A model generated the notes under the pieces. The model was not told where the DNA came from. It was given only the letters and a program-made list of their open reading frames with translations, and ran no database searches. Positions 48,701-51,700 of a stretch of DNA of 64,000 bases are shown here, piece by piece (positions within the stretch are counted from its first letter, which is position 1; every line of letters starts with the position of its first letter). Made by a program: the position numbers and the translations under genes. The DNA is from Macrostomum lignano (taxonomy: Eukaryota), in contig NIVC01003855.1 in assembly GCA_002269645.1 (NCBI GenBank), forward strand, positions 1-64,000, read 5' to 3'.

Positions 48701-51700
48701 GAGGGGAGGAGAGGAGAGGAGAGGAGAGGGTAGGGGAGGGGAGGAGAGGAGAGGAGAGGAAAAAAGAGAGGAGAGGAGAGGAGAGGAGAGAAGAGGAGAG
48801 AGGAGAGGAGAGGGAGGTGACAGGAGAGAGCTGAGAAGAGACACAAACCCTGAGCTGGCCGCATTGCTATTGTGAAGCTTCAAAAGACCCGAAGGCCGGA
48901 TGAAGAGGCTTCGCGGGCCGCATGTGGTCCACGGGCCGGAGTTTGCCAACCCCTGAAATAGAGTAAAGAGCGATGGTACGACGGTGGAGGTAAGAGCGAG
49001 AGTAAGACAGTGGCTCACTGTCACATACTCGTAGGTTTGATGTTATATATCTATATTTCATATTTCATATAAGACGTAACAATTAATAGCCTTTGCAACT
49101 TCGAAGTCCGAGATGAGCAATGGTTACAGTGAACCCACGCCATCCGCTCAGTTCTTCATCACAGGCCTGTCATTTGCCACATTCGCTGTGGGAGCGGACA
49201 AGCCAGAGAGCCGATTGCAGCTGTCATTCACGCTGTTTCTCACCTCAGTGGCTTTCAAGTTCGTCATTAACCAGTCGCTACCAAAGATTTCCTACTTAAC
49301 TTACATGGTGAGAGTTGTTTACCTGAGCTCGTACTTAGTTCAATCCTGTGCCTCCCTCTCTCGAACTCGTATTACAGTTCATGATATCCGGCCTGTCATT
49401 TGCCACGTTTGCTGTTGAACCAAATAAGTGCGAGTACAGGCTGAGGCTGAGCTTCACCCTGGTATTAACCAGCGTCACGTTCAAGTACGTGGTCGCGCAG
49501 TCGCTACCGAGAATCTCCTACCTGACCTACATGGTAAGGCAGGCGGAACCTTCATATTAGTCCGGGCTTTTGAGGGTGAACGGTGGCTCCAAAACTGATT
49601 CCCGCAATTCGGAATCCAAATTAGTAAGGACGCCATGCACTCACAAAACGAGCAAATTTCGCTGGCAGCGGTAATTTGTTTTTTGAGACGGCATCTATCT
49701 ATCTATCTATCTATCTATCTATCTATCTATCTATCTATCTATCTATCTATCTATCTATCTATCTATCTATCTATCTATCTATCTATATATCTATCTATCT
49801 ATCTATCTATCTATCTATCTATCTATCTATCCATCTATCTATATATCTATCTATATATCTATCTATCTATCTATCTATCCATCTATTTATCTATCTATCT
49901 ATCCATCTATCTATATATCTATCTATCTATCTATCTATCTATCTATCTATCTATCTATCTATCTATCTATATATCTATCTATTTATCTATCTATCTATCT
50001 ATCTGTCTGTCTGTCTGTCTGCTTGTCTGTCTGTCTGTCTGTCTGTCTGTCTGTCTGTCTGTCTGTTTGTGTGTCTGTCTGTCTGTCTGTCTGTCTGTCT
50101 GTCTGTCTGTCTGTCTGTCTGTCTGTCTGTCTGTCTGTCTGTCTGTCTGTCTGTCTGTCTGTCTGTCTGTCTGTCTGTCTGTCTGTCTGTCTGTCTGTCT
50201 GTCTGTCTGTCTGTCTGTCTGTCTGTCTGTCTGTCTGTCTGTCTGTCTGTCTGTCTGTCTGTCTGTCTGTCTGTCTGTCTGTCTGTCTGTCTGTCTGTCT
50301 GTCTGTCTGTCTGTCTGTCTGTCTGTCTGTCTGTCTGTCTGTCTGTCTGTCTGTCTGTCTGTCTGTCTGTCTGTCTGTCTGTCTGTCTGTCTGTCTGTCT
50401 GTCTGTCTGTCTGTCTGTCTGTCTGTCTGTCTGTCTGTCTGTCTGTCTGTCTGTCTGTCTGTCTGTCTGTCTGTCTGTCTGTCTGTCTGTCTGTCTGTCT
50501 GTCTGTCTGTCTGTCTGTCTGTCTGTCTGTCTGTCTGTCTGTCTGTCTGTCTGTCTGTCTGTCTGTCTGTCTGTCTGTCTGTCTGTCTGTCTGTCTGTAT
50601 GTCTGTCTGTCTGTCTACTTAATCTATGTAGTTCCTGTGGATCATAACTGAGAAGCCGGAGAAAACCGTCTCTGAAACCGAAAGCGAGATTTGCACGATT
50701 TACAAGTGTAGTGTCCTTTAACTTTAGCTGTCCAATGTTCTCCCACTGATGGAGACAACATGGGGGATAGCGTGGACACGAGTGAGCTGGCAAAAAAGCG
50801 CTGAGGGGGTCCGGACGCAGGCTTCTGCTCAAATCGATATGGGCGAACTAATTGATGGGTACTCCTCAGTCTCTAGGTCTGATAGATCTGATATCTACAG
50901 AGGTTTAACCTATACACCGATTACGAGTAGAAGGCGCTTTTTTACACTTGAATTAGTATAGACTCGCCGCTTGATTTCGACAAACAATCTGTCTGTCATG
51001 CAATTGCTCAGTCAATATATGATGGAAAAATGCAAAATATGTTAGTCACATCATCAAAACAGATTTAAAAAATCAAATAGCAGTAGCTTGTAGCTCAAAC
51101 ACTGAAGCCAAATCGATTTTAAAAAATTGTTATTCTGGTTTGTCGTAGCTAAGCGAGTTTTACCCGATGGATTTCGTTTGAGCAGAAGCTGATTTGGGCG
51201 CAGCGAGTCCGGGGACCCCCTCGCCGTCACTCAGCAGGGGGTCCCGGCCGCCGAGAGCCCCACAAAAGCCCGGACATCCCGACGCGCATTGCAGAGCGGT
51301 TTTATTGCCTTGGATACTGATTAACGATTGGTAGTCGTTTTTTAAAGCACTTAGAAACTGAATGCGCCAATAAATCAAACGGGATATCAATCAATCAACC
51401 AATCAACCAATCAATCAATCAATCAGTCAATCAATCAACTAATCAATTAATCAATCAATCAACCAACCAATCAATCAATCAACCAACCAACCAATCAATC
51501 AATCAATCAATCAACCAATCAATCAATCAACCAACCAACCAATCAATCAACCAACCAACCAATCATTCAATCAATCAATCAATCAATCAATTAATCAACC
51601 AACCAACCAATCAATCAACCAACCAACCAATCAATCAATCAACCAATTAATTAATCAATCAATCAATCAATCAATCAACAAATCAATCGATTAATAAATC

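Follow-up and report, generated by a model that had tools for sequence, protein, structure and literature searches.

In insects, the nicotinic acetylcholine receptor (nAChR) subunit alpha6 (Drosophila D-alpha6; Tribolium Tcas-alpha6, with exons 8a, 8b and 8c) carries alternative exons that change the second transmembrane segment (TM2, or M2) of the channel and are conserved across insects (PMC2064938). What is probably the same kind of system, in a different and orphan clade among the pLGICs (pentameric ligand-gated ion channels), was found in the flatworm Macrostomum lignano. The DNA analyzed, henceforth referred to as the window, comprises the first 64,000 nucleotides (nt) of contig NIVC01003855.1 (NCBI GenBank assembly GCA_002269645.1, forward strand). 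It contains the gene for a Cys-less pLGIC at ~36.7–58.5 kb on the + strand, in which two adjacent homologous exons, referred to as A (exon 6a) and B (exon 6b), each encode a channel lining. As in insect alpha6, tandem-duplicated and alternatively chosen pLGIC exons would thus alter the pore. Insect alpha6, however, is a Cys-loop nAChR, whereas the window gene falls in the Cys-less Pro-loop clade, so that the duplication is independent. Insect alpha6 also combines three alternatives with ligand-binding-domain alternatives and RNA editing, as opposed to two alternatives here, and unlike its insect counterpart the exon described here spans half of M1 and both flanking loops as well. The insect variants were shown by reverse transcription PCR, whereas at this locus we infer them.

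Cys-less, or Pro-loop, receptors were described by Jaiteh et al. 2016 (PMC4795631), and a schistosome clade of them by Johnson et al. 2023 (PMC9874803). The animal Cys-less pLGICs are orphan channels with respect to ligand, current, ion selectivity and function; vertebrates lack them, and they have been proposed as anthelmintic targets (PMC9874803). The schistosome channels Smp_336620, Smp_334630 and Smp_135040 belong to the same family as the window gene and are orphan receptors with an FPxD loop devoid of flanking cysteines, a Glu at -2' and no second Cys-loop. Exons A and B of the window are orthologous to the single M2 exons found in two of these neodermatan genes. In the schistosome and Pro-loop papers each gene is treated on its own, and alternative M2 exons do not come up.

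The protein encoded in the window contains the FPxD motif in its Cys-loop region without flanking cysteines (.../DLTITIT), and no second Cys-loop; the gene was assigned to the Cys-less (Pro-loop) receptors on the basis of this loop. Pfam domain PF02931 (Neur_chan_LBD) was matched with an E-value of 2.1e-7 (31 bits against a cut-off of 26), and a match to PF02932 fell below its cut-off (19.9 against 28.1 bits). M1, M3 and M4 were detected by hydropathy. The best PDB sequence match was the bacterial channel ELIC (E 3e-16, aligned over residues 3–257), to which M1-M2-M3 align with conservation of R0', T6' and L9'. The ELIC gene has no intron, whereas the window protein begins with ~190 aa of hydrophilic sequence as an N-terminal extension and has a cytoplasmic loop between M3 and M4.

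Tandem pore exons in a Cys-less channel gene

Exon A (49152..49307, + strand) is 156 nt long and of phase 0-0, is preceded by ...gctcag and followed by gtgaga, and encodes an ELIC-like pore. Exon B (49378..49533, + strand) has the same length and phase and is preceded by ...attacag and followed by gtaagg. The A-B spacer (49308..49377, + strand) is 70 nt long, has GT..AG ends and is pyrimidine-rich at its 3' end. The pair is flanked by one upstream and one downstream partner exon, namely exon 5 (47156..47413, + strand), which completes the ligand-binding domain, encodes the first M1 half and provides a donor common to both forms, and exon 7 (54319..54636, + strand), which encodes M3, the cytoplasmic loop and M4 (DKYVLMSL...FIFWLYYD/gt) and provides the common acceptor. 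Both A and B are open in the frame dictated by these neighbors, and each specifies the latter half of M1 together with the M1-M2 loop, the complete M2 and the M2-M3 loop.

The two exons are identical at 38 of 52 amino acids (73%) and at 105 of 156 nucleotides. Codon comparison yielded 22 identical codons, 16 with synonymous differences only and 14 with amino-acid changes; the synonymous class includes TCA versus AGC serine switches at codons 25 and 32. Exon B was retrieved by tblastn of A against the window with an E-value of 3e-21, and the same search revealed no third copy of the pore exon within the window. That the duplication exists is certain. A preliminary description of this DNA, made from the letters alone, had listed two 156-nt exons of phase 0-0 with AG/GT sites, 70 nt apart and 38/52 identical. 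Their coordinates, splice sites and identity were all confirmed, as were the serine codon differences and the lack of stop codons. The proposed exon content was upheld by HMMER alignment to ELIC, and the flanking junctions had been predicted correctly, since the upstream exon ends at 47413 and the downstream exon begins at 54319 (ag/DKYVLMSL...).

Judged by these sequence features and by the comparisons below, A and B are probably mutually exclusive pore exons of one gene at this locus. The donor at 47413 would be spliced to either A (at 49152) or B (at 49378), and the chosen exon would then be spliced to the acceptor at 54319. Two subunits would result that share everything from the N-terminal extension through the ligand-binding domain, as well as M3, the loop and M4, and that are distinguished by the second M1 half, the M1-M2 loop and M2. 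The lining of the A-form would be of the ELIC type (Q2'/T6'/L9'/A13'/F16'), and that of the B-form would be R2'/T6'/L9'/T13'/Y16', with an additional Y-1'. With both exons included, M2 would be followed by a half-M1 and another M2 before M3 is reached, and skipping of both would remove M2.

Pore positions were numbered by alignment to the constrictions of ELIC, where Q233 is 2', L240 is 9' and F247 is 16' (PMC12266721). On this numbering, exon A encodes E-2', S-1', R0', Q2', T6', F8', L9', A13', F16', N19' and Q20', and exon B encodes E-2', Y-1', R0', R2', T6', V8', L9', T13', Y16', A19' and Q20'. The A-form therefore matches the pore-facing residues of ELIC at 2', 6', 9', 13' and 16', while the B-form departs from ELIC at 2', 13' and 16'. 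The 9' gate and the -2' Glu are kept between A and B, and the changes at 2', 13' and 16' are accompanied by a change at -1' (Ser versus Tyr); two of the three constriction positions of ELIC (2' and 16') thus differ between the two exons. All three pore changes make B more polar, with charge added by the Arg at 2'. The M1-M2 loop reads GADKPES in A and EPNKCEY in B, and the M1 half differs at two positions. Differences occur at 3 of 6 pore-lining positions and at 3 of 15 other M2 positions, a comparison that is descriptive only given that the sites are too few for a meaningful test.

Threonine at 13' is typical of anionic Cys-loop channels, and V13'T is one of the mutations used in the selectivity conversion of alpha7. 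It is plausible from the encoded residues that the A and B forms differ in conductance, charge selectivity or gating, and the two subunits may co-assemble. A single ligand-binding domain would in this way serve two pores with different residues at 2', 13' and 16'.

Conservation and age of the pair

Comparison of A with B by the Nei-Gojobori method gave a pS of 0.68, a pN of 0.21 and a dN/dS of ~0.14. When 51 random substitutions were placed in A, ~30 residues were changed on average, with a minimum of 19 in 100,000 trials, compared to the 14 observed.

The same exon pair was identified in L040, a 748-bp metagenome contig from ENA that was found through its short open reading frame (ORF) P0173 in the search with the B-form. 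This contig contains the end of the upstream exon, a 165-nt intron (as opposed to 1,738 nt in the window) and orthologues of A and B, which follow each other in the same order as in the window with a GT..AG spacer of 35 nt between them. Exon A of L040 is identical to that of the window at 47 of 52 amino acids with 49 nt differences, and exon B at 51 of 52 with 43 nt differences, synonymous sites being saturated in both. The introns of L040 and the window are unalignable, while exon order and splice sites are kept. Random substitution at the L040 densities (100,000 trials) changed ~27–30 residues, and no trial changed fewer than 16. These identities and simulations were used in place of dN/dS for the orthologous exon pairs because the Nei-Gojobori dN is inflated by TCN/AGY serine switches, as demonstrated by an nd of 14.8 for B versus B despite a single residue difference. 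The contig opens with GTGCTCTTCCGATCT (positions 1–15), which we take to be an Illumina adapter remnant; these first 15 bases are presumably non-genomic.

The source of L040 is, by these sequence measures, a divergent, clearly different, macrostomid-like species, and the case for purifying selection on both exons is very strong. The conserved pore swap suggests that the difference between the two pores is functionally important. Pieces of both exons, belonging to a paralogous copy, are also held by two garbled M. lignano protein models from another assembly (P0093 and P0204). P0204 reads the A-B spacer through as 13 codons, which corresponds to an inferred spacer of 39 nt.

In flukes and tapeworms, two closely related genes were found, and the pore exon occurs once in each of them. 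Gene 1 contains one B-type exon in the complete loci of S. japonicum, Hymenolepis and Mesocestoides (L001, L003 and L004); only a B-like exon was found in Dicrocoelium and Paragonimus, whose loci (L005 and L006) are incomplete, the upstream exon lying outside the available sequence. Gene 2 contains one A-type exon in the Sparganum locus (L008), and the A-type exon is present in gene-2 proteins of Echinococcus, Taenia, Hymenolepis, Mesocestoides, Opisthorchis, Schistosoma, Dicrocoelium, Paragonimus, Fasciola and Echinostoma. Both genes occur within one species, for example in Hymenolepis weldensis, Mesocestoides, Dicrocoelium and S. mattheei.

A neighbor-joining tree was constructed from the 52-residue exon with 1,000 bootstraps. 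The macrostomid B exons grouped with the neodermatan gene-1 exons and a planarian-like sequence at 98–99% bootstrap support, and the macrostomid A exons with the neodermatan gene-2 exons at 79–91%; a sister grouping of A and B received 0%. Exon A of the window is identical to the trematode gene-2 exon from R0' to the exon end. According to this tree, neodermatan gene 2 holds the orthologue of A and neodermatan gene 1 that of B, and the pair predates the split between Macrostomorpha and Neodermata. The old duplication and the selection on both copies proposed in the preliminary description were substantiated. It had also suggested that relatives be searched for the pair, which L040 contains in the same order; the dN/dS it had called for is the value given above. 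The simplest reading is that the ancestral gene already had both exons and that each neodermatan gene copy kept one of them.

The constitutive part of the M. lignano protein grouped weakly with neodermatan gene 1 (61–72% bootstrap). A separate gene-2-type gene of M. lignano was absent from the results of both full-length protein searches, which leaves A as the only known source of an A-type pore in the species. Splicing and gene duplication would stand in for each other here, with exons A and B of Macrostomum equivalent to genes 2 and 1 of flukes and tapeworms, in what is a well-resolved case. Beyond the exon pair itself, the finding of most interest is this deep orthology, in which each exon corresponds to a neodermatan gene of its own.

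Probable choice between the exons

Transcript-based evidence was available for three paralogous M. lignano loci. The GenBank models BOX15_Mlig010629g1, BOX15_Mlig010629g2 and BOX15_Mlig022486g1 all read ...NVFLIM/FMISGL...SYLTYM/DKYVLMSL, in which B is included and A is skipped. The Mlig_3_7 annotation, to which the BOX15 tags belong, consists of genome-guided RNA-seq assemblies with TransDecoder ORFs rather than ab initio predictions, and minor isoforms were dropped from it (PMC5730564). In the UniRef models P0002 and P0009, which belong to the paralogue group, A is joined to the downstream exon; the provenance of these two models could not be checked. In P0009, one extra base past this junction shifts the frame. 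The UniRef models of M. lignano (P0002, P0009, P0093, P0204, P0205, P0243 and P0270) disagree with one another in this region, some having A only or B only and others being fused, retaining the spacer or containing frameshifts. At this position the public models of this species are in error, with one of the forms missing, the two exons fused or the sequence garbled.

The best outside support for exon choice is provided by the nemertean Lineus longissimus. Its gene annotated as 'gamma-aminobutyric acid receptor subunit gamma-1/2/3-like' (isoforms X1–X11, XP_064647155–XP_064647167) encodes an orthologous Cys-less channel with either/or 156-nt M2 exons. RefSeq isoforms X1 and X2 (522 aa each) differ only in the pore exon, as do X5 and X6 (514 aa each); X1 and X5 carry one exon and X2 and X6 the other at the same position, and never both. 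The two alternatives differ, as in the window, at -1', 2', 13' and 16' (A13'/F16' versus T13'/Y16'). Unlike in the window, the T13'/Y16' exon comes first, and the nemertean exons do not group with the flatworm A and B exons. The matching genomic pair was observed in metagenome contig L007 as two 156-nt exons with a 75-nt spacer, the second exon being identical to that of Lineus X2. The Lineus isoforms are automatic annotations, and no paper describing them was found. Exclusion at the window locus itself would, we infer, be strict.

Several observations weigh against mutually exclusive use of A and B. Double inclusion and double skipping both remain in frame, so that nonsense-mediated decay cannot remove either product. 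The UniRef models P0205 and P0270, which represent the window's own copy and are 100% identical to its upstream exons, join A directly to B (...SYLTYM/FMISGL...) and end inside B; this join may be an ab initio prediction, or it could be a real transcript. Three protein searches returned nothing derived from transcripts of the window's own copy, whether from Logan or elsewhere, and all three RNA-seq-derived paralogue models are of the B-form. The argument for use of A in M. lignano would accordingly draw on its conservation and on UniRef models of unchecked provenance. The absence of A-form RNA-seq models could, for its part, be due to an assembler setting that drops minor isoforms.

These points bear most directly on the explanation that B is effectively constitutive in M. 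lignano while A, though conserved, is rarely or never included, either because its use is confined to a tiny cell population or because it is en route to loss, as in neodermatan gene 1. The skipping of A in the three RNA-seq-derived models would be expected under this explanation, as would the weak grouping (61–72% bootstrap) of the constitutive part of the protein with the B-only gene 1. Exon A nevertheless has perfect splice sites and an open frame, shares 47 of 52 residues with its L040 orthologue at saturated synonymous sites, and is identical to the trematode gene-2 exon from R0' onward. It is joined to the downstream exon in P0002 and P0009 and is the only known A-type pore source in the species, and the transcriptome pipeline that yielded the B-form models discarded minor isoforms. 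Constitutive use of B is consequently regarded as improbable. Regular inclusion of both exons, with the 70-nt spacer as an ordinary short intron and a duplicated M1b-M2 module in the protein, would break the four-helix topology common to every relative. Every orthologue whose complete locus was inspected has one such exon per gene or isoform, as do the RNA-seq-derived models, and the spacer in L040 is down to 35 nt. Although joining the two exons preserves the frame, some flatworms tolerate very short introns, and P0205 and P0270 read through from A to B, those two models are truncated inside B, and this explanation is considered very unlikely.

The preliminary description had judged an assembly artefact unlikely because of the divergence between the exons, a judgment that is reinforced here. 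Hidden polyploidy and a redundant assembly are features of M. lignano (PMC5730564), a setting in which collapsed alleles or paralogues could come to lie side by side. The two exons differ, however, at 51 of 156 positions, far past allelic or homeologous divergence. The pair also recurs in another organism that was assembled independently (L040), in models derived from another M. lignano assembly (P0093, P0204 and P0205) and in a nemertean (L007 and the Lineus RefSeq gene), which makes an artefact exceedingly improbable. Mutually exclusive use of A and B is retained as the preferred explanation.

The mechanism of such exclusion might be sought in the spacers, which are short in four lineages. 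They measure 70 nt in the window and 35 nt in L040; the M. lignano paralogue has 39 nt (inferred from P0204), the nemertean contig 75 nt and a further metagenome locus, L020, 51 nt. By steric hindrance, a short spacer would put the branch point of B too near the donor of A. With a spacer of 35 nt, the branch point of B would have to lie within ~10–20 nt of the A donor, and the two sites would be physically incompatible. Exons 2 and 3 of alpha-tropomyosin are mutually exclusive by steric hindrance of this kind, in which donor and branch point are incompatible across a short intron. The window resembles that system in that two homologous exons lie next to each other with only a very short intron in between. 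Steric hindrance is a possible cause of exclusion at this locus, held on present analysis with somewhat less than even confidence. Annelid-like loci with the same exon pair have spacers of 430–950 nt and, unlike in the alpha-tropomyosin model, must use another mechanism. Micro-introns of ~30–40 nt exist in neodermatan flatworms, and the genome papers give mean intron lengths for Macrostomum but not the minimum. All three points count against the steric step. RNA folding of the spacer region was no better than that of shuffled sequences (z +0.51). A competing RNA structure of the docking/selector type was not supported by the spacer and the upstream intron, neither of which is conserved from the window to L040; no search against an orthologue was made for the long flanking introns.

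Related loci and the remainder of the gene

Scanning of metagenome contigs with the exon alignment returned 28 loci. Six of these (L013, L014, L016, L017, L018 and L020) contain two tandem exon copies with AG/GT sites, phase 0-0 and saturated synonymous divergence. As far as the contigs reach, the copies are accompanied by single partner exons on both sides (L014 and L016), upstream only (L013, L018 and L020) or downstream only (L017), and the 51–950 nt spacing leaves no room for a second gene. In the annelid-like loci L013 and L014, a single M1 residue and position 13' (A/T) are all that distinguishes the copies, with a dN/dS of ~0.015. In L020, which has the 51-nt spacer, the second copy carries Y-1', H2' and Y16'. 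The preliminary description had stated that no such case was known in the Cys-less clade. This holds for the literature searched, since full-text searches found no publication linking Cys-less channels with alternative M2 exons, but it does not hold for genomes, where the same architecture is present in at least seven other loci.

The two exons of L013 pair with two tandem Capitella genes (85–89% and 60–64% bootstrap), and the annelid-like exon pair and the two genes would thus show an exon-versus-gene equivalence like that of the flatworms. In the Capitella teleta sequence concerned (L002, KB292506.1), two complete Cys-less genes lie in tandem at 4071–7899 and 10001–12837, ~2 kb apart and with starts ~6 kb apart. 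Their M2 exons read VA and IT at 12'/13', mirroring the A13'/T13' pair of L013 and L014.

A single exon was found in Ridgeia, Dimorphilus, L012 and all mollusc isoforms examined. Because the mollusc isoforms all share one M2 exon, an alternative exon is not a general feature of the family. No tandem exon pair was found in S. japonicum, Hymenolepis, Mesocestoides, Sparganum, Ridgeia, Dimorphilus or Capitella. In Dimorphilus gyrociliatus, which has a compact genome, the upstream, M2 and M3-M4 exons are fused and both M2-flanking introns are absent (L038, 10385–10915).

The A13'/F16' and T13'/Y16' types could represent one ancient, conserved module of spiralian Cys-less channels, which would take the form of mutually exclusive exons in macrostomids, in nemerteans and in a number of annelid-like lineages, whereas Neodermata and Capitella would have it as paralogous genes, with the two subunit types being obligate heteropentamer partners. 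If this were true, a macrostomid would build a heteromeric pore with an Arg 2' ring from a single gene by regulated splicing. The proposal is speculative and rather unlikely. The tandem pairs may share one origin or have arisen several times: in the exon tree, the exons of different phyla do not group by type, and the nemertean pair is in the opposite order.

The remaining exons of the window gene, all on the + strand, were located mainly with UniRef models. Exon 1 (36707..36772) contains the start codon, and exon 2 (37051..37554) encodes a hydrophilic N-terminal extension of ~170 aa that ends in ...RCRIRSEK; both were found by tblastn of P0270 and by peptide search. Together they (36707–37554) account for the ~190 aa ahead of the first beta-strand. 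No hydrophobic segment resembling a signal peptide was detected in this extension, the maximum Kyte-Doolittle mean over 19 residues being 0.97. The motif near its end (... RCRIRSEK) is common to the annelid orthologues P0163 (Dimorphilus) and P0012. Exon 3 (39909..40037) contains the start of the ligand-binding domain, as determined by tblastn with P0008/P0005 and by the Pfam Neur_chan_LBD match. A spliced leader that supplies an ATG to exon 3 (39909) was considered and rejected, given the coding exons at 36707–36772 and 37051–37554 that P0205/P0270 and tblastn provide. Exon 4 (45685..45885) encodes the part of the ligand-binding domain that includes the Cys-less 'Pro-loop'.

Downstream of exon 7, to which the UniRef M. 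lignano protein P0013 is 100% identical, a short exon 8 is present at 54942..54989. It is followed by a candidate optional (cassette) exon at 55913..55972, the 3' end of which is not fixed; this exon is included in the paralogue model P0002 and skipped in P0013 and in the GenBank model P0269. The last coding exon (58380..58520) encodes NKIQFYQMVETHG...SQLTNH, followed by the stop codon. The coding exons with fixed ends measure 66, 504, 129, 201, 258, 156, 156, 318 and 48 nt. Each starts in phase 0 and is a multiple of three, so that the frame survives skipping of any of them.

Long tandem arrays fill the introns of the gene at 38348–39867, 41397–42453, 43517–43973, 46097–47061, 49693–50616, 51386–51982 and 52489–54249. 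Their units include 29/36 nt repeated ~42–45 times, 38 nt 28 times, 34 nt 28 times and 22 nt 80 times, and ATCT/TCTG/ATCA microsatellites of 0.6–0.9 kb are also present. The array at 49693–50616 begins just 160 nt past exon B.

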